A DNA stretch of 64,000 nt. Source: Ylistrum balloti (taxonomy: Eukaryota). Of this stretch, positions 5,590 to 23,790 are shown piece after piece; position 1 is the first letter of the stretch; each line of letters begins with the position of its first letter. The notes below the pieces were generated by a model. That model was not told the DNA's origin, ran no database searches, and saw only the letters and a program-made list of their open reading frames with translations. The stretch spans positions 558,001 through 622,000 of the forward strand of contig NW_026781918.1 of the NCBI RefSeq assembly GCF_031769215.1, written 5' to 3'. The position numbers were made by a program, and so were the translations under genes.

Positions 5590-7440
5590 TTGCCAGATGA
5601 CCTTAGTCTTAAATATTTAAGAGCGGAGCTTTTCAGATTAAAGACAAAGGCTTTGATATCTAAAGTAAAGGGTGGGAATCAGATCAAGAAGTTTAAGGAG
5701 GGACTCAGGTTTTCTAAATATAGCTGGGATGTCATGGTTCACAAGGAAGAGAACCAGTTAATGGTTGAGACAATAAAAGCAGTCAGTCAGAAGCAGTTAT
5801 AAGGAAAGGAAAAAGAAAACAATGACTTAAGAAAAAAGTTATGTAAGTTTAGTTTAGCAACAGAAACTCAAAAAATGAAAAAAAAACACATGCCTGGGTA
5901 TCAATCAAAACTTAGGAAACTAGACACAGATAAGTGTAGAACAGCATTGAGTTTTCTGACATAAAATGGGGTTACTCCTATTTCAGTTACTGTTATGAGA
6001 AATAACAAAGAAGAGGTTTTGAAACTTTTTGATTACGAGTCTAAAGAAAATTCAGAGTTGAATCAAAATGTTGATGACATAAATACCCTCATATACATCA
6101 TGGATACTTTCAATATTAGTAATGAAGCATACCATGGATTGAGTATGTTATTTAAAGCACTTCCAAGAAGTTATGCTATCAGTAAGATTGTGGCTGAATT
6201 AAATTCTAAGTTCAATTGAAATTACTCCAAATGGTCTTTGTTCAACAACCTCTGAAAAAACACTTGGTAAATGTGTTGTGTAATATAAAAGATATGAACA
6301 AAAACTTCCCACCAGATGGATAAATCAGAATTAATATTTCTGGGGATGGCACTAATGTGGGAAAGAGAGTTCATGTTGTAAATGTGACTTTTACCATTAT
6401 CAATGAGAACAAGAGTGCTTCTGTGCAGGGTAACTACCCATTAGCTATTATTAGAACAAAAGAGAAATATCAAGACCTTGAAATTGGTCTAGATGACCTC
6501 CGAAAAGAAGTAGGTCAGTTACAGGGAACTACACTGACAGTCAATCAAAGAAATTTCAAAGTTGAAATAATGTTTGGGGGTCATTACAAATTTCTATTGG
6601 TAGTTTGTGGAATGCCTTCAATTGCTTGCCAATACTATTGCCTTTACTGCAAATGTAGCAAAACTGAGAAATTAGACCTGTCAAAAACTTGGTCTATGGA
6701 TGATACTACACAAGGGGCTAGACTTGAATACAAGTACAATGAGGTACAAGGGGGAAATATGTCCAACGGAAAAATGAGAAAAAATGCCAATAATTGTTTC
6801 TCTGTGTCATACAAACCTTTATTCCCAACAATTTCACCCCACCATGTTGTGATTGATCACCTTCACATGTTTTTAAGCATTACTGGCAAATTATTTAACC
6901 TTCTTGTCGCTGATCTTAGATGCATTGAAAACATAACAGAAAATGCAACTTTTACCTCTACAGTGCAAGATAAAGATAAGATAAAGACGGTCTTGAAGCT
7001 CGAAAATGTGTTGCAAATGTTGGGAATACATTTTGAACTTGGTGTAAATGTTGATAGTATAAAGTAAGAGTATCGTGAGCTTACTGGTCCAGAGAAACTT
7101 TTGCTGCTTAAACATTTTGATGCAGCTGAGTTTTTTGATGACCGAAATAAAGCCGTTCAGATTCAGAAGTTGTGGGATGGGTTAAGAGAGCTGAACATGT
7201 GTATTAAATCTGACACCCCAGATGCTGATGACATAGAATACAAAGCAAAGTTGTGGTGTGACTTGTACTTAAGTTGTTATCCAGCCAAAGATGTCACCCC
7301 ATACATTCATATGCTAGGTATCACTTAGGTGAACTCCTCAGAAAACATGGTGCTATTGTCCGATATGTACAGCCAGCAGGGCTTAGAAAAGCTCAACGAC
7401 ATTGTAACAAAGCAGTTTTTCAGAGGCACTTCTCACATTT
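5590..7440 (+). mobile_element. Decayed RAG1-core/Transib-like DDE transposase (pseudogene with stops and frameshifts)
   Basis: Joining frames gives RAG1-core motifs in order: FNISNEAYHGL; IRINISGDG (D at 6345-6347); FGG[H]YKFLLVVCG (second catalytic D position is CAT at 6582-6584); YYCLYCKC (Zn); VIDHLHMFL; ELTGPEKL; VTPYIHML-YHLGELLRKHG (Zn His pair); QQGLEKLND (E at 7386-7388). In-frame stops at 5800, ~5960, 6321 and 7065; frameshifts near 6220, 7320 and 7373. Confidence 0.78.
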
Positions 7441-8640: not shown

Positions 8641-11260
8641 AACAGGAGACCCATGGGCCATAAGGTCATCTGACTACAAAACCTTACCCACAGTCAGATG
8701 ATCTAAAAATGGAAAAAATTGAAAACTTATTTTTCCAGATCGGGACACCATAAAAGAATTTCAAAAAAGGTAGAATTATTTGGTAGCAGCCTAACTCATA
8801 TATTAAATCCTCTAATTCTTCAACCAAAATTTCAACACTGCATGATAGTGTCTTGACAAAAGAAAAGGCCCAATGGTCTTAACAGTCACCTAAATTCCAT
8901 AAACATTGTTTGTGGTGTGTTATATATATCGCATAAAACATCTTGTTTACATAGTTAACGGTCATCCTATATTATGGATTCTCATAGATTTTGAATAAGA
9001 GAGAAAAAAAATTCTTTATAAGCTTCTGACTTAATACCACTCCCCAAGGGAAAATGCAAGGATCATGAAATTCATAATTTGGGTTAAAGCATCTCAAAAA
9101 CCCTTCCATCTATGAAAAGTATTTGATTCTTCCATATCCGAGTGTTGTGGAGATTTTTGAAAATTTGATTCAATTCGACACTGCCAAAGTCCCCTAGGTC
9201 GTAGACATAGTACTTCTTTCCATTGGGCATAAAAATATCTACCAAATTTCACTAAAATTGGCTCAGGGGTTTTCAAAAGAAATAAAAAAAGTATATTGTT
9301 TTACAAAAGATGGGCAAAATGGAAGAAATTCTTTACAACTCTTTACTATCTAGTATGAAATGCTGTTTAATTTAAGTAATAACTACCCGGCCAATGTTTT
9401 ATAAACAGGAGGCCCATGGGCCTTAACAGTCATCTGAATATATAGACCTATATATGAAAGAGGACAAATAAGCCTAAGACAAACTGCTCAACTACTCTAC
9501 AGCATACAGAAGATACTGTTTGGTCATAAAAACATTTTCTGCAAACTTAAAATCATATTCTTTATACATGCTACTACGCAAATGCCATTATTCCGAACCT
9601 ATTGCTTATTGAAAAACCAATTTCAACAGCCTTGACCTTTTTGTTATTGACAAGAAGTCATCAAAGATTTTAACAAATTTGACCCTTGTGACCTTTAAAA
9701 AGTGAAAATATAAATAACATGAACATAATTGGTAATTCATTTCAGCATACTACAGGTTATCAGAACTTTTTGGATATTGAGAAGAAATCATTTAAAGATT
9801 ATTAAACATTTATTCCTGTGACCTTGAAAATGGGTCAAAATCATTCATTTTATCAAACATTCTTGACAGGAATTTTACATACTGAGCATATTGAAATACT
9901 GCAAACTTAGAAATTCATCCATCCTTGGTCAAGTCAACGGAAATATCGTACTTGTTATCTACAAATAGTATTGCCACAATTTTCTTCCTTTTGATTAAAA
10001 ACTAATCACTGTTTCAATGCTTGCATCTGGAGGGTTAGTTGGAGTTAACATGATACCAACCTGGACAGCTGGATGTTTAATGGGCATCAATATAATGTCA
10101 GTCTGGATATCTGGAGGTTTAGTGGCAGTTAACATGATACCAACCTGGACAGCTGGATGTTTAATGGATGTCAATATAATGTCAGTCTGGATATCTGGAG
10201 GTTTAGTGGGAGTTAACATGATACCAACCTGGACATCTGAATGTTTAATGGTTTAGTGGGGTCATGATACCAACCTGGACAGCTGGATATCGATATAATG
10301 TCAGTCTGGATATCTGGAGGTTTAGTGGGAGTTAACATGATACCAACCTGGACAGCTGGATGTTTAATGGGCAGTAATATAATGTCAGTCTGGATATCTG
10401 GAGGTTTAGTGGGAGTTAACATGATACCAACCTGGACAGCTGGATGTTTAACGGGTGGTAATATAATGTCAGTCTGGATATCTGGAGGTTTAGTGGGAGT
10501 TAACATGATACCAACCTGGACAGCTGGATGTTTAATGGGTGTCGATATAATGTCAGTCTGGATATCTGGAGGTTTAGTGGGAGTTAACATGATACCAACC
10601 TGGACAGCTGGATGTTTAATGGGTGTCAATATAATGTCAGTCTGGATATCTGGGGGTTTAGTGGGAGTTAACATGATACCAACCTGGACAGCTGGATGTT
10701 TGATGGGCGTCAATATAATGTCAGTCTGAATAGTTGAGAGTGAGAGTCAAAATTATTTAATCCAATCATCATATTAGAGATCAGATCCAGCAAATACAAT
10801 ACAAACCATTGAGAAGCTACAACAGTAATTGTTAAATAAGGAAATGTCAACAAACGGGCCAACAGGGAATGATTTGCGTAGTCTAACTGCTGATGATGGG
10901 TTTGCGAAAATATACATCAATTAGCTTTACAATGACAAACATGAAGTCAACAGCAAGAAGACTTTAAACCAATTTTAGGTCATGCATCCTTACATAAGAA
11001 TATCTTTGAAAAGCTTTACCTTTATTTTCAAAATTTGACCTCGTCCCTCTGCCTAAGCCTACCAATCATGCAAAACCAAGTTTCATCATCCAAGGATGCT
11101 TCAGACAATTTTTGGACAAAATCCTGCTATTCTTACACAAAAAAATGAGAAGATTTTTTCTTTTTTAACATTTATTTCCTCTATTCAAGCCTCTCATATC
11201 ACTTTGTACAAAGACACGCCTTTCATCCAAATTTAGTCCCAATTAAAGCATAAGTAAAAT
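8641..11260 (+). mobile_element. Degenerate Helentron/HINE-like (non-autonomous Helitron) fragments
   Basis: Three related termini of the AACAGGAGGCCCATGGGCCTTAACAGTCATCTGA type at 8641-8673, 8862-8892 and 9404-9437. Internal segments such as ACCAAATTTCACTAAAATTGGCTCAGGGGTTTTCAAAAGAA and TTGACCCTTGTGACCTT resemble bivalve HINE internals. Boundaries are approximate. Confidence 0.55.
10020..10728. repeat. 84-bp minisatellite (~8.5 units, two truncated), a dimer of 42-bp subunits
   Basis: ATGATACCAACC recurs at 10050, 10134, 10218, 10264, 10337, 10421, 10505, 10589 and 10673. The two halves of the unit align at 30/42 positions. Confidence 0.95.
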
Positions 11261-11581: not shown

Positions 11582-11711
11582 ATGGTCATCTTCTCCAGAG
11601 TGACTGGAGCTATATCCAGTGACTTTGTTGCCAAGTTTCCACAGCACTTCAACTTCATAGAAATGCTAGAATCTGTCTGTGAAGAGACAGGCACACGAAT
11701 TATGAACCAGG
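11582..11711 (+). CDS. C2H2 zinc-finger protein A, coding exon 1 (absent from the ORF track)
   Basis: ATG at 11582 is the first in-frame Met after a TGA at 11492. Encodes MVIFSRVTGAISSDFVAKFPQHFNFIEMLESVCEETGTRIMNQG, which aligns with the N-terminus of ZNF-B. Donor G|GTACGT at 11711/11712 is phase-compatible with the acceptor at 12528. Confidence 0.8.
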
Positions 11712-12147
11712 GTACGTGTGGGGGCCTGTATCTTGATATCGTGCATGCTTTGTAATATACAGCTAGCGTCACAGTAGCGGGTTGGTGTATTTAACAGTTA
11801 AAACTTTCCTACTGAACGGATTGTACAATATAACATGCAATTAAAGAGCCTTCTTTCACTGTCACATTCATATAAAGAATTGATGGACGTTCAATACTCA
11901 TTGTGTCATCTCCATGGAGAAGAACTGATAGTTAATATAACTGATAAGCTTAAGTCTAGAAATTCCTCTCTGAAACAAATTATTTCAGCAGGATTCAATA
12001 CTGTGCCATGTCTTGCAATACCAAACCACAAAGTTATATCGTTGTCGCACACATGTACATGCTATGATAGCCAAAACAATTGTGAAAACCAACTTATCAA
12101 AAATGATCATATATCTAGTGGTGTAGCAGAACTGGACAAAATTGACT

Positions 12148-12230
12148 AGGGATGTGGCTCTATTAGTAGAACTTCTATGTAGATATGAAGGTCCCAGATT
12201 TGAACCCTAGTGTGGCATTGGATTTTCTGT
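12148..12230 (+). mobile_element. tRNA-derived SINE fragment (intronic)
   Basis: A-box-like TGGCTCTATTAGTAGA and B-box-like GATTTGAACCC at tRNA-like spacing; no intact cloverleaf. Confidence 0.45.
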
Positions 12231-12394
12231 TCAGATTAAATTTGTTGCATGTGACCAACCCTGCTTTATGTAAACGAATGCTTGACAATAGGATATCAGA
12301 ACCTGGGTTGTAAATACTTGTGTTTGTGGATATAATTACTTAGAAAAAGGAGGGAGGAATATGGAAAAAGAACTGGACTGGGTCGATTGTCAAT

Positions 12395-12487
12395 GACCAA
12401 GTAGCTCAATTGGTAGATTATCGGTTTGAAGTTTGGAGGGTCCCAAGTTTGACCTATACATGGCTGTTTTTTCCCACTCACATTACA
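12395..12487 (+). mobile_element. tRNA-derived SINE fragment (intronic)
   Basis: GTAGCTCAATTGGTAGA (A-box)...GAGGGTCCCAAGTTTGACC (degenerate B-box), followed by a TTTTTTCCC..TTACA tail. Confidence 0.55.
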
Positions 12488-12528
12488 GTTGTTTTATAAT
12501 TTGTAACATGATGTTCTGTTTGTTTCAG

Positions 12529-14798
12529 GAAACAACAACTTTGAGATAGTTGGTGACTGGTCACAAATGACTTTTGTCCATAGTATGCTCGAAAATACTA
12601 TGGCTATATATGGTGCTGTTGCCATGGTATCCAGTGCTTATCCACCGGCTAAGGACCTAAAGATAGCTCACAACAAACGCATGACTCCTGACACCAATGA
12701 TCCAATTGTGCGGGATGGTCACGGCGGAATGCGTGACCAAACCGACATGGGGGATAATTCTTACACATCAGGGAACCAAGCTAACCGTTACTATGACTCC
12801 AGAGTTGGGCCTTACCCAGCAGGCAATAATGGTGATCGTTTCTTTGACAGTAGAGGCAGCCATTATACACCAAGCACAACAGGAAATAGGACTTTTGACA
12901 ATCGGGGTTGGTATTTTTACCCTGGTAATATGACGGACAGAGTACATGATCCAAGGGCAGCGTCATACATGCCAACAAATAATGGAGATAAGTTTTATGA
13001 TTCCAGAAGTGGTCCTTACACACATGGGTACAGTGCAGAAAGGCATTATGACCCAAGAATGGGACCATACACACAAAACAACATGATGGATAGACACTTT
13101 GACAACAGAGAAAGATCTTACACACCAGGTAATATAGCAGATAGACCATATAATTCAAATATAGGACTGCAATCCACTAATATGAATGATAAAAATCCAT
13201 TGAATGTGACAAATAGCTTAGAGCTGCCTCCACTTGCTGCTAGTTCTACACCAACAGGTGGAAGTATAGAAGGGACAATCAATAGATTGGAATCAACAGC
13301 TAACATTGCAGCAGGAAGTCTCACTCAACAAGGGGAGGCAACTCAGGCAAGTCATGGATTTTCAGGAAAACAATTAGAGACAAATATATTGAGCCAGATA
13401 AGTGGGGTTCAGGAAGACTCTGACCATCACAGAACATCTTCTGCAGATCTTGTAGTTACTGAAAAAGAGGTGGCACAGACAGAAGTGAAAGTAGAAGAGG
13501 AACAAGAAGAAGGAGTAGCAAAGAAATCTTTGGAAGCTCATCACGATGAAAGGCATGAAAGAACATCAGAATCAGCTAAGGAACCAATCATTGAATCTCA
13601 GGAAACAAGTGATGCACAAAATAAGAATGACAGAGATGATGAAGATGAAGAGGCAAATGATGAAGTTGATCAGTCTCACTATGCTGATCCAGACTACCAT
13701 TTAGATTCTGACACAGAACACTCTGAAGGTGTTGAGAATTTCGATTCTGAGGGGTCAAAAGATAGTATAGCCTCTGTGAAGGTGAAAAAAAGGAAATACA
13801 AGAAGAGGAGGGTCGAAAGGCCACCAAAACGATATACCAAAAAGAAAAAAGGTAAAAAGGCTTTATCTAAAGAAACACCTGTTGAGGGCAAGAGAAAGCG
13901 TGGTCGTCCGAGAAAGAACACAGGCCCCGATAGTAATATAAAGTGTCCTGACTGTGATTTCATAGCAAAGGATAGAAAAAGCTTGTACGCTCATAATCGA
14001 AGGGCTCACCTGAATGTTGCAACTAACTGCAATATCTGTGGGAAGTTATATCCCAGTCTTTTTGATATGAAACGACATCGTATATTGATTCATAATCCCC
14101 CAAAGTATTGTTGTGATATCTGTGGAAAGCGTTATAAAGTCAATACAAGTTTAAAACTTCATGTAAAATCGCATGAACCAAACTATGTAAAACCTGTATA
14201 CCCTTGCTCATCCTGTGATAAGTCGTTTGCTAACCCCAGTCTTCTCCGAACACACACTCGACGTAAACATGAACCTGAGTCTGAGTTTGAACGGGAGGTG
14301 AGAGAGGTGAAGCACTTCTGTTATATCTGCCATAAAACATTTTCCTCCAAAGCAGCATTACAAGAACACACCAAAATTATCCATATGAGAATCTACGACC
14401 ACCAGTGTGATCAGTGTGGTAAGGTGTTTGGATATGAGAAATCTCTAGCTACACACAAACTCATCCACTCCTCAGCAAAGAACTTTGTATGCAAAATCTG
14501 TGGAAAAGCTTTCAAGCAGAAATCTTGCATGACTATCCACCAAGCTATCCACATGGAGAAGAAGTTCCTTTGTGGACACTGTGGGCGTGGTTTTACTCAG
14601 CGGCAATCACTTCGACGCCATGAAATCATACACCGTGGAGAGAAACCATACTCGTGTAAGCTTTGTGGTCAGGCCTTTAATTCTATATCCACCATACGTC
14701 GTCATGTCATCCTTGTACACAAGCTTCAAAAAGATTCTAGTGTGTGGCGCGAGGATATAAATGTGGACACAGAACTTCTTGCCAGTATCAAGACGTAA
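12529..14798 (+). CDS. C2H2 zinc-finger protein A, coding exon 2 (799 aa total; 17-aa repeats, acidic region, AT-hook, 9 C2H2 fingers)
   Basis: Acceptor tttgtttcAG at 12527-12528, in frame with the 743-aa ORF 12567-14798. Nine C-x2-C...H-x3/4-H fingers at 13944-14720, including an HRGEKPY linker. AT-hook KRKRGRPRK at 13890-13916. Confidence 0.93.
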
Positions 14799-16119
14799 CC
14801 TAAAATTTAATCTCTGCTTGAGTATATAGCTAACATTATGTGGACAATTTTCATTAGCCTCTGTAGTGCGATATGGGCTACTTTACAAATGTGTACACTA
14901 ATTTTCCTTTGATGGGAATTAATATACATAGGTGTAAACACAAACACTTGTATATGTCGAGAATGTAAGCCACCAAAGTAACAATATACAGACCACTCTA
15001 CATCACACCATGATAGAGGTCTGTAGATTTTTACTTCGGTCATCTTCATTTCAATATGTACAGTGCACATCAATTGTCATTACTGTATTTATCCGACAAT
15101 AAGCCCAATATGCTTTGTATTATGATGAAACATTTATATATTGCTGCTAGTTAATTTGCTAACCAATGTTATTTTTTTTATCTTGTAATAAGTTCACTCC
15201 CAACTTTGTGTCATAAGTAATGTTTCGATCCCTTTGGGCTTATTACACGAAAAATACATTACAGGAATTAGATTCAATATTTTAACAAATCTGGTACCTT
15301 TTGTATGCCTGATTTAAATTAATTTCATTATTGAATTCAACTAAGTCGTCCTAGTTCTGTGGTAAAAACTCATGCCACCTTTTCCGCATGTACCAGTATT
15401 GAAATTAAAGTCTTATCTAGCTCTGTTTTTGAGAAAAGATATTTTGACTACTTTGGTATTTGTGAATTAATTGTTAATTCTATGCAATTAACATATTGTG
15501 TACATCTGATTTATTATTTTGTTATTTGTTGTTCTATTTGTTTGTGTTTAGCACTCTTGATTTACAGATAAGAGAAAACTTGTAACCTACATGTAAAACT
15601 ATAATATTTCAATAATTTTTAAGGTCACATGTTGAATTCTGACCTCGCAATGGCTTGATTATGCATATTATAACAATTTCTTCATCTACATATATTCATC
15701 ACATAATTGGCCTTTTATCCAGCAAATTCAGCCATGTTATATTTTTGCATGTGTTAATTACCAGTGTAATATACACTGGATTATTTGTCATTGACTGCAC
15801 CCGTCAGAAATTGATTGAAATTTCATAAGTTGGACTATGAGATTATGTTATGAATTGAAAGTGGTGCAACAAAATGTCTACCTCCCTTTGATTTTTGTCC
15901 TTCATATTTTGACCTCAAAACCTGTCAAAATGGAACTTTTCTGATTTTTTTTGTGATAAGAATTATCTTAAATTTGTTGTCATTTAATATTGATTTTTTT
16001 ATGAAACTTTTCTGAAAGTTTCCAGTTTTGCTCGCCAAGGTACACAATGATAAAACATTTCTATGACTTGTAGTACAAAATCTCATATTTAACATAGGTA
16101 TCAATTATCCTGCATTCTG

Positions 16120-16221
16120 CGGGGTAGCTTCAGAAAATCACCAGCTTAAAGTCGTTATCTCCAATTTAGTACATCTCCCAATTGGGGTCAGATTTATGCT
16201 GGATTTCTGTAGCCACCCCTG
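16120..16221. mobile_element. ~100-bp MITE-like inverted-repeat element
   Basis: Left GGGGTAGCTTCAGAAAATCACCAGC and right GCTGGATTTCTGTAGCCACCCC are imperfect reverse complements flanking a ~50-bp core. Confidence 0.5.
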
Positions 16222-19094
16222 ATTTAACTCTGTAAAATCACAAATGTCCAAGTTGTGGTGTGTCTGACACCGATGCAGTATTGACACGGGTGATTAAAGA
16301 TCTCTATGTATGTAGCATCACAGTTGCTTACCAGTTGGGACAGTGCTGGTTTTTTATTTTAAGGAAGTTTGATGTTTGTAGTTCTTTCATTTGCTGCTGT
16401 AATAGCCATAATGCAGTTTCATTTTGTCTTGAGAAACAACTCTGTGGAATAGAGTGTCTTTTGTGGGAATGCATATGAAAATTGATTAAAAAAAAGGATT
16501 TTGATATCTTTTGAGAAAACCCCACGATATAACTTCTCAAGCAAATTTACCTTGATATACTCGAGTGTATAATTGTACCCATAATAACTGCCTCTACTAA
16601 GTTTTTAGAAGCCAGATCATAAGGCTCTTCAGCAAAACAACACACATATTTTGTATCTAAAATGATAATCCAAGATGAAATTTTGTTTTTAACATTTCCA
16701 TATCACATTTATTGACATATAATATTAATTTACATAGACCTATAAGATATTGTATGAAGTAAAAAACTTTACAAATGATTGAAATAGGATTCAGATGATT
16801 TTTGTCCTTTAATATTAAAAATATTCTGGTTTTTATTGAAACATCAGAACAAACCTTTCTCATTATACAACTGTAATAGATATACATTTCTTTTTATACA
16901 TCTATAATAATTGTAGGCATAGATTTTGATGTTTTCAGTTATTGTCTGTTTATTGTTGTATAGTTGTACATGTTGCAGTAGCCTCCTAGTTCTTACCAAT
17001 GTCACCAAGCATCACATTTGTTTCTTTATCACTGGTGACAATATATACTGGTACATGTATTTTAAGATCCTTTCTTGATTCTCAATCACTGTTGTGTCCC
17101 CGTAAATCAACAATGTAAGGAATGATGTATATGAAATGCAATAGACCAAAAGAAACCTATCTGTGATTTGACAGTTACTGTTTATTGATGATGAAAGTAT
17201 GAAAGAAATACAATAGTTGATTTGAAGGTTAAAAATCCATTAATGAGATATTAAGATATAGTATAAATAATTATAAATAAGGGTGTCTTTAGACTTGAAT
17301 AACCTTGTAGTATCTATACCTCACCCCAGAGAAAGATAACATCAATACATTCTTTGCTACATAAAGGGGTGCTTTTGGTATTAGGTAAAGTGATGACTGC
17401 ATCAGTATGGATGCTGTAAGGAGATTTTTGAATGGATACAGGTTACACATTTCTAGGTCCTTTTAATCATGTATTCATGCAGGTTTAACATCTGTAAATT
17501 AACTTATACAGACTTTTTCCCAAATTCTTTTATATGAAGCCTCCATTTATGGGTCTTGTATAATTAACTGTCCTATACTGTTAAGTATTACAATGTTACT
17601 CAATGTACTTACAAGTATGATACTGAACCATTAATTATAATTGGTGTGAATGTTGTTGTCAGCAAGTTGACAAAATGTTTATAAATGTTTGTTAATACTT
17701 ATATACATTATGAAAATGTAGCTGTACATCTTTATGTATTTTGTACATACATATGTGTATACGCTTTTGATAATCCAAGGTTTGGTTTGAAATAGACTAC
17801 ATAGCGTAACATGCATTTTATATAAAAAGTAGAACTGAGAAATAAAATCAATGAAGAAAACTCATTTCTGTGATTTTTTTTTTTTTTTCGTTTTACATAA
17901 AACAATACCATTTCAGCAATTTTGAAGCCAAAAGCACATAGTGAAGACCGTATTGTTAGCTTTTTGCCTTGATATCTTTTGGTTGTTATATATTAATATC
18001 TTTGTTAGAGATGGAAGTTCCAGTTAGCCCATTAGTTAAATGCTACAAGTCCAGTAGTAATCAAAGTAATATGGATAGTTAAGCTTTAAGGAAATTAGCA
18101 CTGTTTTGACAAATGTGACCCATATTTTGACATTGAAGATATGTCACAAAAACCTATATTTTCTCTGTCACAGATTAAGTTAGAATTTTAGTTCAATTTT
18201 TTGGCTTATACTTAGCTTTTTGAATGGTGAAAAGATTTGCTCTATTTGGAACATCCACCCTGGAGTAGAAACATAGAGATCCTCACTCCATTTGAATGGA
18301 TTGCACAAGCCGATATACAAATACGTTATACATGCCTATAGGATAAGCCCTGATGGAGACATGCTCAGTAGGTCATGACTGAACTTCATCCTATTATACA
18401 GTTTCGGGGCAGAGTATTACTATTACTTCCACACTGAACTATGCAAAGGGTAGAAATGCATACATGTACTCTCACTTGCATGGATTTGGACTTATCTCCT
18501 TGATCGAAGGTTGGATGGAATATTGTAATTCTGATGTATGTACACCATTCCATTCAGTTCGTCAGCATACATGTGGACTATAATGAAAATTCAAGTGGAC
18601 CAATCAAACCTTTTTTAATGGAAGTGCTTGCTTTGTATTGCTTTGGAGGTTATAAGGTCAAATGTCAAAGCCACGAACTTTAAATGGAAAATTGGTACAA
18701 ATTACCATTTGCTAATTTGAGATTGCTTTTCAAGTTAAAATGTAATATAGGTCAAGGTTACAAATTGGAAAATTCATTTTGACTCTATAACTTGAGTTTT
18801 ACTGACTAACTTAAAGAATTATGAGGCTTTGGTATTTATTTGACATTCTTTGAGTTTTTTTGTTGATGACAAAATTATTTTAAAATTGCGGTTCATTCTT
18901 CCTTAATTAATATGGACTAGAGTAACCTCCCTTTTAATGGAAATCTCAGGAAAAGAGGAAGAAAACAAACAAAATGGTCGTGAGGTACACACAAAACAGA
19001 TTGTTTTCGTTATATAGATATGTAGTCACCATTATATAGTGTAGTGTATAGTTTGGGGTCTTTGAATTCAGGAAGAGTACCCTGTAGTACCGTT

Positions 19095-21512
19095 ATGACA
19101 CTTATTTTCTCTAAAGTTCGAGCAGATGTTGCTAAAGATTTTGTATTGAGATTTCCCGAACATTTTGATTTTACCGGCATGTTGTGTCGTATCGGTGAGG
19201 ATTTTGGTGTCAGTGTGATAAAAGGATCCGGTTTTTATCGTTTGGAGGGTCAGTGGTTACCGATAGGCCAAATTCATGAAGCATTGACCAAAACACTTGC
19301 TATGTATGAGGCGTCGGGAACGATACGAGCTGACAATACCACGGAACGATGTAATGCCAAAAACTCCAGAATTACGGATTCGCCCACTTCACGGATTGAG
19401 TTGAATACCAAAGTTGAGTCACAGTTGGAATCAGATGCAAAGACGGACAAGGGACCCGATGTGAATGTTAAGGATATGGACCGTGATGATGATTGTGGCG
19501 ATGAAAATCACAAATTTAACTCGCTGAAAAACACCATATCTGACATTTACACATCACTTGTCACAGAGGGGGAAGGCATCACCACTAATCATCACAATAA
19601 TGCCCAAAATGACGTTCAAAAGATGAAAGACATAGTTGTATTGGAAGAAGATAAACATTTACCACTAGTGAAGAAAAATCTTACGTTCATTGAAAGTTGC
19701 CGGGTTAATAGTTTCAATGACAAATTCGCACTTTCAACATTAAAAATAAATAATTGCTGTACAACTAGCAATAAATCTTTATCTGGAGAGAAAAACTGTG
19801 ATAAAATTTCATCTGTGTCTTCAAAACAGAGAGAAATAGTGGAACAACCTGACAAAACGTCAGTTTCAATTAAAAAGTGTTATAAACGAATCAAAATGGA
19901 TAAATGTGAAGCTGATAGGCACGGAAATTTGGTAGACAATCTTGGATCACAAGAAGAATTGAGATATCAATGTGTAGAATGTAACTTTACCCACAAAAAT
20001 CATACTGCTGTAAGACAACACTTTTCACGTATGCATCGAGTGGAGCCAACCAAATGTAATGTCTGCCAAAAACTCTTCCCAAGTAAGAGATATGCTAAGC
20101 GACACTGTCGTTTGGTACACAGGGACTCACAATACTGCTGTGATGTCTGTGGTAAGACATACAAGTTTCTGCAAACTCTTGAAGGCCATTTGAAATCTCA
20201 CAGAGTTGGCTATGTTAAACCTGACTTTCCTTGTCATATGTGTGAAAAGATATTCTCTTCTAATCATGTTCTAAAATGTCACATGAAGTCTATACACTTT
20301 GGAGAAAATCGTACATATTTGTGTCCAGTGTGTGGCAAATGTTTTACCACGAAACACTCTCTGAATATGCACCAGAATGTCCATTCAGGAAGTCGTCCTT
20401 TTACTTGTAAAATTTGTGGAAAATCTTTTACATATGACTCGGCTCTCAGAGATCACAAATTGATTCATTCAGGTAAAAAAAACTTTGAGTGTAAAATTTG
20501 CAATAAAGCATTTCAGCAAAGATCTGGATTACAAATGCATGCAAAGATTCATGACGAGAAGAAGGCCTTTGAGTGTAAAGATTGTGGACGTGCTTTTATA
20601 CAGAAACAGTCTCTGCAGAGACACGAGCGATCACATAAAGGGGAAAAGCCATTCTCCTGTAAAGTGTGTGGCCGATTCTTTGGTGATTCAGGAATCATTC
20701 GTCGTCATTTGATAATGGTACATAAAATCAATAAAGATGCCAAATCTTGGAGGGAAGATATTGTTGAGAAGGGTCGAAAAGACCCTGAAGAAGAAAGTCA
20801 GAGAATCACCAAGGAGAATGGCATTGGTGCAGATTTAATTGAAAATTTTGAGCAGAGCAAGAAAAAATCACATGAACCAGAAAAACGTAAGACTATTGAA
20901 CATGTAGACACTGAAACTAATCAATCAAGCATTCCTTGCCCAAAATATCAGGAAGATGGTGGTACAACTGTGCAACCTCAAGGTGACTCGGATAATCTCG
21001 AGACATTCACCACATCTCCAACACATGAGTCCCCATCTCCAAACTTACTACAGGGGACAGATGAGCCAAGATATCTCTCTGATCCCCAATCATTTATCAC
21101 CAATGACTATAGTCGCACTTTGCCTCTCCCCTCACAACTATATCCCCATGGTACTAGTTTGGGAGTAGAGGCAACACCTAACAATGGTTTTCACCATCCA
21201 CACTACCTAAACCCTCCACTCTCCAGTCACGTGGACACTAGTAGGTACCACTTTCCCATGACTTGCTCTCAGCATGCTATTAGTATGGTGTCAGATGCCC
21301 GCTACACAATGACTCAGATGGAACCTCCCAGTCTTAATCTGCCGCAGGTAGACAGTGTTTTGAATAAACATTTACATGATATGGAACCTCCTGAAAACTT
21401 GTCCATATCATCCCTCTATGCCTACTACACAAATCTAGCATCACAATATCTCAGTGTTTCCCAATGCCAAGGCTATAGTGGAGAAAATCACATTACCACT
21501 GACCAGGAGTAA
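19095..21512 (+). CDS. C2H2 zinc-finger protein B (805 aa, single coding exon, 9 C2H2 fingers), paralogue of ZNF-A
   Basis: Long open frame; the ATG at 19095 aligns with the ZNF-A start. Nine fingers at 19971-20723 with HSGSRPF, HSGKKNF and HKGEKPF linkers. P/S/H/T-rich C-terminal tail of ~250 aa. Confidence 0.92.
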   Translation: MTLIFSKVRADVAKDFVLRFPEHFDFTGMLCRIGEDFGVSVIKGSGFYRLEGQWLPIGQIHEALTKTLAMYEASGTIRADNTTERCNAKNSRITDSPTSRIELNTKVESQLESDAKTDKGPDVNVKDMDRDDDCGDENHKFNSLKNTISDIYTSLVTEGEGITTNHHNNAQNDVQKMKDIVVLEEDKHLPLVKKNLTFIESCRVNSFNDKFALSTLKINNCCTTSNKSLSGEKNCDKISSVSSKQREIVEQPDKTSVSIKKCYKRIKMDKCEADRHGNLVDNLGSQEELRYQCVECNFTHKNHTAVRQHFSRMHRVEPTKCNVCQKLFPSKRYAKRHCRLVHRDSQYCCDVCGKTYKFLQTLEGHLKSHRVGYVKPDFPCHMCEKIFSSNHVLKCHMKSIHFGENRTYLCPVCGKCFTTKHSLNMHQNVHSGSRPFTCKICGKSFTYDSALRDHKLIHSGKKNFECKICNKAFQQRSGLQMHAKIHDEKKAFECKDCGRAFIQKQSLQRHERSHKGEKPFSCKVCGRFFGDSGIIRRHLIMVHKINKDAKSWREDIVEKGRKDPEEESQRITKENGIGADLIENFEQSKKKSHEPEKRKTIEHVDTETNQSSIPCPKYQEDGGTTVQPQGDSDNLETFTTSPTHESPSPNLLQGTDEPRYLSDPQSFITNDYSRTLPLPSQLYPHGTSLGVEATPNNGFHHPHYLNPPLSSHVDTSRYHFPMTCSQHAISMVSDARYTMTQMEPPSLNLPQVDSVLNKHLHDMEPPENLSISSLYAYYTNLASQYLSVSQCQGYSGENHITTDQE

Positions 21513-21824: not shown

Positions 21825-22352
21825 TATCAACACAGCCCAAGAATTATATCTCGAGTTAAGAGATCAAGTTGTATTGAGGAAGTCACAACACATTAGTATT
21901 GACCAAGGACAAAGGGGTCACATTAGATTTGTGTGTCATACCACATCAACACAGCCCAAGAGCTAAAGGATCACGTTTAGTTGCAGAGTTTCACCCAATC
22001 AACCAAGTTAATTGAACTAAGGGGTCGCATTGAATTGTGGAGTCGAAAAGGGGTCAAGCCACATCAACACAGTCCATGAACTAAGGGGTCACACGGAATA
22101 AAGGGGTCAAGCTACATCAACACAATCCATGAACTAAGGGGTCACACTGAATAAAGGGGTCAAGCCACATCAACACAGTCCATGAACTAAGGGGTCACAC
22201 TGAATTAAGGGGTCACGCCACATCAACACATTCCATGAACTAAGGGGTCACACTGAATAAAGGGGTCACGCCACATCAGCACAGTCCATGAACTAAAGGG
22301 TCACACTGAATTAAGGGGTCACGCCATACCAACATTGTCCATGAACTAAGGG
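21825..22352. repeat. 53-bp minisatellite (~6 units, 22048-22352) with degenerate ~59-bp units upstream
   Basis: ACATCAACAC-type motif at 22061, 22114, 22167, 22220, 22273 and 22326; diverged copies at 21825 and 21943. Confidence 0.9.
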
Positions 22353-23387: not shown

Positions 23388-23790
23388 CACTTGGGATCTG
23401 TCCTGTTTCAGTACACTCTTCCTCCATCCTCGATGTTCCCGGGGTTGCGGGCACTTCTGCACCATCGGAATGGACGAGAACATAATAAATGCCCTTGATA
23501 TCTGTCCGTTACAATACATTCGTCTTCCATCCTCGATGCTCCCGGGGTTGCGGTCACTTTCCCTCTCGCACTATCGTTATGGATGTGAACATATGGAATG
23601 CACGTGAGATCTGACCGTTACAGTACACCCGTCATCCATCCTCAGTACTCTGGGGTTTCAACCGCGTTCCCTCTCTATACCCTTGGGGTTGAAGAAAACG
23701 TATTGTACTCCCTCTATTACAGCACTTGGGATCTGTCCGTTTACAATATACTCGTTATCCATCCTCGATACTTGGGAGTTATGATAAATT
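23388..23790. repeat. Four degenerate ~105-120-bp direct repeats
   Basis: Core GATCTGTCCGTT(T)ACA(A/G)TACA.TCGTC.TCCATCCTCGAT recurs near 23394, 23497, 23606 and 23727. Confidence 0.8.

Follow-up and report, generated by a model that had tools for sequence, protein, structure and literature searches.

A probable GXXG-less KH-like domain at the N-termini of two C2H2 zinc-finger paralogues from the scallop Ylistrum balloti and of a small mollusc family

Two zinc-finger paralogues with a shared N-terminal domain

A 64,000-nucleotide stretch of Ylistrum balloti contig NW_026781918.1 (assembly GCF_031769215.1, positions 558,001 to 622,000 of the forward strand; referred to below as the window and numbered from its first letter) contained two tandem zinc-finger (ZNF) genes, ZNF-A and ZNF-B, whose products were confirmed by sequence comparison as paralogues sharing a ~75-residue N-terminal domain that was predicted to be folded. 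This domain is most likely a very divergent K-homology (KH) domain. Both proteins belong to a mollusc family of C2H2 zinc-finger transcription factors that is small and old; its members are headed at residue 1 by a compact domain with predicted KH type I (KH-I) topology, and we hold with moderate confidence that this domain is a divergent KH-like protein-contact module, devoid of the GXXG loop, at the head of C2H2 factors.

The domain of ZNF-A was encoded by two exons on the + strand: (i) coding exon 1 (11582..11711; ATG at 11582, GT at 11712), which supplied residues 1-43 and the opening base of codon 44 and coded for beta1, alpha1, alpha2, and beta2, the first half of the domain, and (ii) the start of exon 2 (12529..12620, +; residues 44-74), which coded for beta' and the long C-terminal helix, the second half. 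A phase-1 intron of 817 nt (11712..12528, +, GT...AG) divided the domain between beta2 and beta'. The domain of ZNF-B (19095..19316, +; residues 1-74, ATG at 19095) was located in a single exon.

The two N-termini shared 25/78 identities [32%, expectation value (E) 5e-18, BLASTP], against the 26/74 counted by hand in an earlier note on this DNA that had proposed the shared domain; exon 1 of ZNF-A by itself shared 16/41 identities (39%, E 6e-12, BLASTP) with residues 3-43 of ZNF-B. The finger arrays displayed 46% identity over 274 residues (E 2e-76) and ended in a common WREDI tail, and nine regex-defined C2H2 fingers were counted in each protein. Between the N-terminus and the fingers the two proteins had no alignable stretch, as the same note had observed for the residues following the shared domain. 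A 28-row profile of the family (A2) matched ZNF-A exon 2 at window positions 12510-12641 (G000:C61:570510-570641; E 1.8e-7) and the N-terminal domain of ZNF-B (E 1.6e-27); ZNF-A was searched exon by exon, and the database protein P0003 stood in for its whole domain.

Predicted fold and probable relation to KH domains

The AlphaFold prediction for the ZNF-B domain (mb05267511168; 28-row alignment) gave a folded model with a predicted local distance difference test score (pLDDT) of 85.5, 56 residues at >=90, and a predicted template modelling score (pTM) of 0.71. Its strand (E) and helix (H) elements, E8-11, H14-17, H26-37, E40-44, E47-52, and H54-75, followed the beta-alpha-alpha-beta-beta-alpha order of type I KH domains. 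The Foldseek list was dominated by KH-I domains at weak scores: the best was vigilin KH12 (E 9e-3, TM-score 0.64), none reached E 1e-3, and further matches of this kind were hnRNP K KH3, PCBP1/2, MEX3C, Nova, and PNPase. A search of the ESM Atlas by shape returned PARP14-like proteins, RBM43 (KH_I_RBM43), and PCBP4 at TM-scores of 0.65-0.71; by features, the same resource yielded nothing but clusters of phage RecA C-termini (0.89-0.91), and these were treated as noise.

Database profiles were nearly silent on this domain. Its residues 1-82 matched no Pfam family at E<=1, and none of the KRAB, SCAN, BTB, and ZAD models was found among 28 family members at E<=5, in line with the earlier claim that no recognised ZNF effector domain is present. 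No KH family was detected by hmmscan at E<=1 on the window pair or at E<=5 across the 28 members, except KH_PARP14_8, the only recurring domain-like match, at E 0.09 in two of the 28; the Pfam KH_PARP14_8 model searched against the scallop genome gave no match above E 3.7. Sequence searches of the PDB with profile A2 and with a smaller profile, A1 (see below), produced nothing significant, with threonine synthase, a lysozyme repeat, and ribosomal protein S12 at E 0.003-0.6.

In a profile-profile comparison, the family alignment was set by hhalign against 14 complete KH_1 domains of the same genome. It scored 25.0 (P 2e-4, probability 46-48%, 40-41 columns), while 200 column shuffles reached at most 15.0, 200 block shuffles at most 18.4, and the reversed alignment 12, so that 0/400 shuffles attained the observed score. 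The aligned part covered only alpha2 to the last helix (the last two-thirds) and was in structural register: 'sGA.I.I' of KH was placed on 'DaGV.I', and the beta'-ending Gly with the following hydrophobic/Ala positions on 'L.G.W..m..AH..L'. The first third of the domain was not aligned to KH_1, and the global mode failed. From alpha2 onward, through the final helix, the KH pattern would be retained as ..ML..IcEDaGV.I.. followed by ..L.G.W..m..AH..L...L.

Relative to classical KH_1 domains (PF00013: hnRNP K, PCBP, vigilin, and Nova), the mollusc domain shared the beta-alpha-alpha-beta-beta-alpha order in its predicted model, the sequence pattern between alpha2 and the end of the C-terminal helix (with the beta'-ending Gly and the hydrophobic spacing after it), and a beta2-beta' loop of variable length, but it lacked GXXG, was acidic instead of basic, had no Pfam match, and occurred singly, heading a zinc-finger protein that binds DNA, rather than in RNA-binding proteins. 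GXXG between alpha1 and alpha2 was found in 0/29 members, with a hydrophobic F-P-x-x-F-D-F-like segment in its place; net charge was negative in 26/28 members; and Phe5 and Gly52 were invariant across the family, with Trp54 nearly so. The domain may descend from KH but was not filed as a KH_1 member, because it lacked GXXG and had no match to the Pfam profile; judged on the predicted model, it can be described as 'KH-like (KHL)', namely a KH-I fold, GXXG-less and acidic. The suggestion of a GXXG-less KH-like domain of the PARP14 type was partly supported: it agreed with the predicted topology, the KH-dominated Foldseek list, and the missing loop, and the trace of sequence kinship to that type was not significant (KH_PARP14_8 in 2/28, E 0.09).

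That the resemblance to KH is convergent, and that the domain is an independent small alpha/beta fold (e.g., a stability or regulatory module needing a free N-terminus), is rather unlikely. Such a fold would account for structural scores that all lay within the range reached by small alpha/beta domains through common arrangement, for a first third without sequence similarity to KH, and for the invariance of Phe5 and a start confined to residue 1-4, features with no counterpart in KH domains. It would leave aside a profile-profile alignment that was in structural register and far above the shuffles, an element order that was exactly that of KH-I, and a Foldseek list filled by KH domains instead of other folds.

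Proposed function and comparison with known systems

Probable descent from KH being granted, canonical binding of RNA or single-stranded DNA (ssDNA) would have been lost, since GXXG was replaced by the hydrophobic F-P-x-x-F-D-F segment and the domain is acidic. By analogy with other GXXG-less KH domains, it may serve as a protein-protein contact module in self-association or cofactor recruitment, and the DNA-bound finger array would gain an effector function from it. A complex prediction with two copies of the ZNF-B domain scored 0.00, with the fold of the partner itself uncertain and the family alignment unused, and it gave no verdict on a homodimer.

We consider it improbable that the domain is instead a working nucleic-acid-binding KH, which would use a non-canonical surface for RNA or ssDNA as a second contact beside the fingers. 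The KH-I topology, the predominance of KH domains among the structural matches, and the KH sequence pattern kept from alpha2 to alpha' speak for such a function, and the authors of PMC11080071 leave nucleic-acid binding by KH-like domains possible. These points are outweighed by the absence of GXXG (0/29), the negative net charge (26/28), and an alpha1-alpha2 segment (FP..FDF) that is hydrophobic and neither glycine-rich nor basic; furthermore, KH1 of KHNYN has undergone the same loss and is part of a domain for which no RNA binding was detected.

Three groups of known proteins were compared with the contact module proposed here. The KH-like domains of DTX3L, PARP9, and PARP14 are GXXG-less and acidic, and they engage in homodimerisation (KHL1 of DTX3L, also termed D2) and in heteromeric contacts (PMC11080071). 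The mollusc domain resembled this set (DTX3L D2 = KHL1, PDB 8r79) in its KH-I fold, predicted in the scallop, in the lack of GXXG, and in acidity, but displayed no significant sequence relation to it. The two also differed in context: the KHL set belongs to vertebrate interferon-response proteins with RING/DTC, macro, and PARP catalytic domains as partners, while the mollusc domain is single, strictly N-terminal, and combined with C2H2 fingers.

KHNYN KH1 has lost GxxG, and the domain containing it shows no detectable RNA binding (PMC11997328). KH1 of KHNYN/N4BP1 was similar to the mollusc domain as a GxxG-less KH module; it differed in that it makes up one half of a packed di-KH unit, which has a helical extension and precedes a NYN nuclease, and no sequence match or specific structural match of the mollusc domain to KHNYN/N4BP1 KH1 was found.

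KRAB, ZAD, SCAN, and FiNZ are lineage-specific N-terminal domains that decide what DNA-bound C2H2 factors do, and we know of no lineage-specific domain of this kind described for molluscs. Together with BTB/POZ, they shared with the mollusc family a small conserved N-terminal module, a variable linker, a C2H2 array, and confinement to one animal lineage, but had no sequence match to the mollusc domain and a fold other than that predicted for it. Families of these types also comprise tens to hundreds of fast-evolving members per genome, in contrast to the conserved handful seen here. ZAD, SCAN, and BTB are dimerisation modules (PMC7913770), which offers an analogy for the contact role proposed for the mollusc domain.

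In the portion of the literature covered, no description was found of a KH-like domain on C2H2 proteins or of an N-terminal domain of mollusc ZNFs. It is quite possible, though short of probable, that the family constitutes an undescribed ZNF-associated effector class, limited to molluscs and dating back at least to the divergence of bivalves and gastropods, in which a KH domain without its RNA-binding loop was co-opted as an N-terminal protein-interaction module. If true, it would be an example of a KH fold serving in the position of KRAB, ZAD, or SCAN, and would add a case to the growing group of GXXG-less KH folds working in protein contacts. The advance is modest, given a fold already known, a small family, and a function read from analogy; it lies in a useful family definition for mollusc transcription-factor biology, i.e., a defined, conserved ~75-residue module with a confident model that can be expressed, tested for partners, and possibly turned into a Pfam entry, and in the correction of at least nine mollusc gene models in public annotation that begin inside the domain (see below).

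Family size, architecture, and taxonomic distribution

Homologues were collected first with profile A1, a weak profile of four rows (two scallop B-type N-termini and two ZNF-A exon pieces), against 1.84 billion representative proteins. This search, of the kind the earlier note had called for, returned 29 matches at E<=1e-3, of which two were discarded as low-complexity false positives and 27 were real. The match lay at residues 1-80 in 27/27 real members, and all 17 full-length members scanned had C2H2 arrays as their only notable Pfam domains. The species-named members were 100% molluscs: bivalves (Sinanodonta, Mactra, Dreissena, and pectinids) and gastropods (Patella, Haliotis, Littorina, and Babylonia). 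Members without a species name were not assignable to species but were placed inside mollusc clades of the tree. The family is provisionally regarded as restricted to bivalves and gastropods, its absence elsewhere being provisional because the large search used the four-row profile; with that limit, the proposal of a lineage-specific ZNF module was supported.

Finger arrays gave a second route to the family. A search with the ZNF-B array yielded 37 proteins at >=45% identity, 37/37 from molluscs, and 83 generic poly-ZNFs of other phyla at <=42%; the genera added in this way were Aplysia, Elysia, Biomphalaria, Physella, Bulinus, Lymnaea, Candidula, Gigantopelta, Plakobranchus, Batillaria, Saccostrea, and Mya. 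The N-terminal domain was detected (hmmsearch, profile A3) in 24 of the 37 mollusc array relatives and in 0/83 of the poly-ZNFs of other phyla, and 16 of the 24 positive proteins had played no part in the construction of the profile. A further nine of the 37 began at an internal Met ('MEKAY...') within the last helix of the domain and appear to be truncated gene models missing the first exon. Ten public models started at an internal Met in this helix ('MEKAY...', 'MEQAY...', or 'MTFVHSML'): P0080, P0081, P0083, P0087, P0089, P0091, P0093, P0100, P0107, and P0006. These starts are a hint that gastropod genes commonly have, like ZNF-A, an intron within the domain, which ZNF-B and the remaining scallop copies lack.

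In the genome of Y. balloti itself, a single-sequence search found only the two window copies, and profile A2 found four more on other contigs: L013 (G000:C146:970285-973203, +), L014 (G000:C719:691370-693235, -), L012 (G000:C531:110096-111367, -), and L015 (G000:C384:959658-959891, -). The genome of 648 Mb thereby contained ~6 copies of the domain, each ahead of C2H2 fingers. One of the four further copies had the same long array (972 aa), one had a different array after an intron, and two contained only the first finger pair, present once or twice (frames of 621 and 423 aa).

One oyster-type member with a divergent domain copy, P0116 (Logan cluster, 749 aa), represented 107 member sequences on contigs of ~3.4 kb from public runs, which suggests that transcription of this gene may be common in a heavily sequenced oyster.

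Conservation and evolution

Between Y. balloti and other pectinids (Pecten and Mizuhopecten), ZNF-A displayed 93-96% identity in the domain, 70-71% in the linker, and 97-98% in the fingers; the corresponding values for ZNF-B between Y. balloti and Mizuhopecten were 66%, 37%, and 87%. Judged by these identities, a fast-evolving linker separates two conserved parts, the domain and the finger array, and the domain is under stronger constraint than the linker. In a tree of 26 full-length members, proteins from scallop, abalone, and zebra mussel joined in one clade with a support of 98, and this paralogue is judged old because they do so; the same tree contained a gastropod clade and a bivalve clade, the latter including ZNF-B, while ZNF-A formed a long pectinid-only branch without settled position. 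Mizuhopecten and Pecten likewise carried the A-B pair on a single contig.

This record bears on the reading that the domain is a KRAB-like silencing module in a fast-evolving ZNF family tracking transposable elements (TEs), which takes up the TE-silencing role raised in the earlier note; this reading now appears very unlikely and was left unsupported. The N-terminal placement before a poly-C2H2 array is indeed that of the KRAB, ZAD, and FiNZ families, and repeats were present near both genes. Nevertheless, there were only ~6 copies in 648 Mb, paralogue groups were common to bivalves and gastropods, the arrays were 97-98% (ZNF-A) and 87% (ZNF-B) identical between scallop genera, and the tandem pair was kept on one contig in two other genera; few copies, old orthology, and near-identical arrays are signs of conserved targets and run counter to an arms race of the KRAB type. 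Apart from TE tracking, the domain may have a repressor function.

Gene structures and support for the ZNF-A splice junction

The joining of 11582-11711 to 12529, proposed in the earlier note, proved correct in its coordinates. Upstream of the acceptor, a pyrimidine-rich tract was followed by the AG ending at 12528; Gly44 was encoded by a codon split as G|GA across the 11711/12529 junction, after which the frame was open to 14798. NCBI proteins of Y. balloti matched the window at 100%. Residues 1-43 of the NCBI model P0003 (799 aa, same species) were identical to the exon 1 translation, and the whole joined reading (residues 1-74) was identical to the N-terminus of this model. The same join was present in models from Pecten maximus and Mizuhopecten, so that the NCBI models of three pectinid genera agreed, and the joined ZNF-A domain aligned with the uninterrupted ZNF-B sequence. 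The junction was accepted because of these canonical splice signals, the continuity of the frame, the agreement with ZNF-B, and three annotations in three genera. The only public run that covered the ZNF-A stretch was of DNA (X1); its one contiguous contig included the intron and provided no transcript support for the junction. X1 differed from the window by a 10-bp insertion in the intron at 11988 and 29 single-base differences over 4.1 kb, presumably allelic variation.

Virtually no weight is left for the reading that there is no domain at all and that the similarity is due to chance or to a gene-prediction artefact: it could draw only on the absence of RNA evidence for the ZNF-A junction, and it was refuted by the similarity of the paralogues (E 5e-18) and by about 60 homologues with the domain at the same position, in addition to the confident fold prediction.

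Downstream of the domain, ZNF-A comprised (i) a linker (12621..13940, +; from translation) with degenerate repeats, an acidic stretch, and a basic motif and (ii) the C2H2 array followed by the WREDI tail and the stop (13941..14798, +; Pfam zf-C2H2, E 2e-34). The linker contained ~7.5 copies of a degenerate 17-residue tandem repeat (DRxYDxRxxxYxPxxxx; about 12783-13170, +), which were kept in the Pecten and Mizuhopecten orthologues and had no counterpart in ZNF-B. The basic motif KRKRGRPRK (about 13896-13913, +), located ~10 residues ahead of finger 1, resembled an AT-hook or a nuclear localisation signal; a similar motif, 'RRPRKS', was present in heterobranch gastropod relatives (P0087, P0093, and P0100).

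ZNF-B was encoded by a single open frame (ATG at 19095, end at 21512) and was composed, beyond its domain, of a fast-evolving linker (19317..19967, +; 37% identity to the Mizuhopecten orthologue), the C2H2 array ending in WREDI (19968..20762, +; Pfam zf-C2H2, E 3e-26, and zf-H2C2_2, E 4e-31), and a C-terminal region with the stop (20763..21512, +; 58% identity to the Mizuhopecten orthologue) carrying the tail motif SISSLYAYYT.LASQYL. This tail (…EPPENLSISSLYAYYTNLASQYL…) was strongly kept in Mizuhopecten, while ZNF-A had no such tail and ended just after the fingers. The NCBI model of ZNF-B, P0001 (790 aa), omitted 45 nt (19920-19964, +) as a GC...AG mini-intron; the frame was open throughout these 45 nt, the Mizuhopecten orthologue had residues there, and the mini-intron looks doubtful.

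Neighbouring repeats

No runs of N were present in the parts studied. Three tandem repeats flanked the pair: (i) 42/84-bp units at 10025-10732 (42 bp repeated ~17 times; 96% alike when compared at period 84), which lay ~850 bp ahead of the start of ZNF-A, (ii) 53-bp units at 22047-22352 (5.8 copies), downstream of ZNF-B, and (iii) 109-bp units at 23388-23643 (2.4 copies), also downstream of ZNF-B. The 42/84-bp repeat was open on both strands and gave rise to spurious open reading frames (ORFs) of 143-166 aa. The only other ORF of the window exceeding 180 aa was one of 236 aa at 6357-7067 (+).

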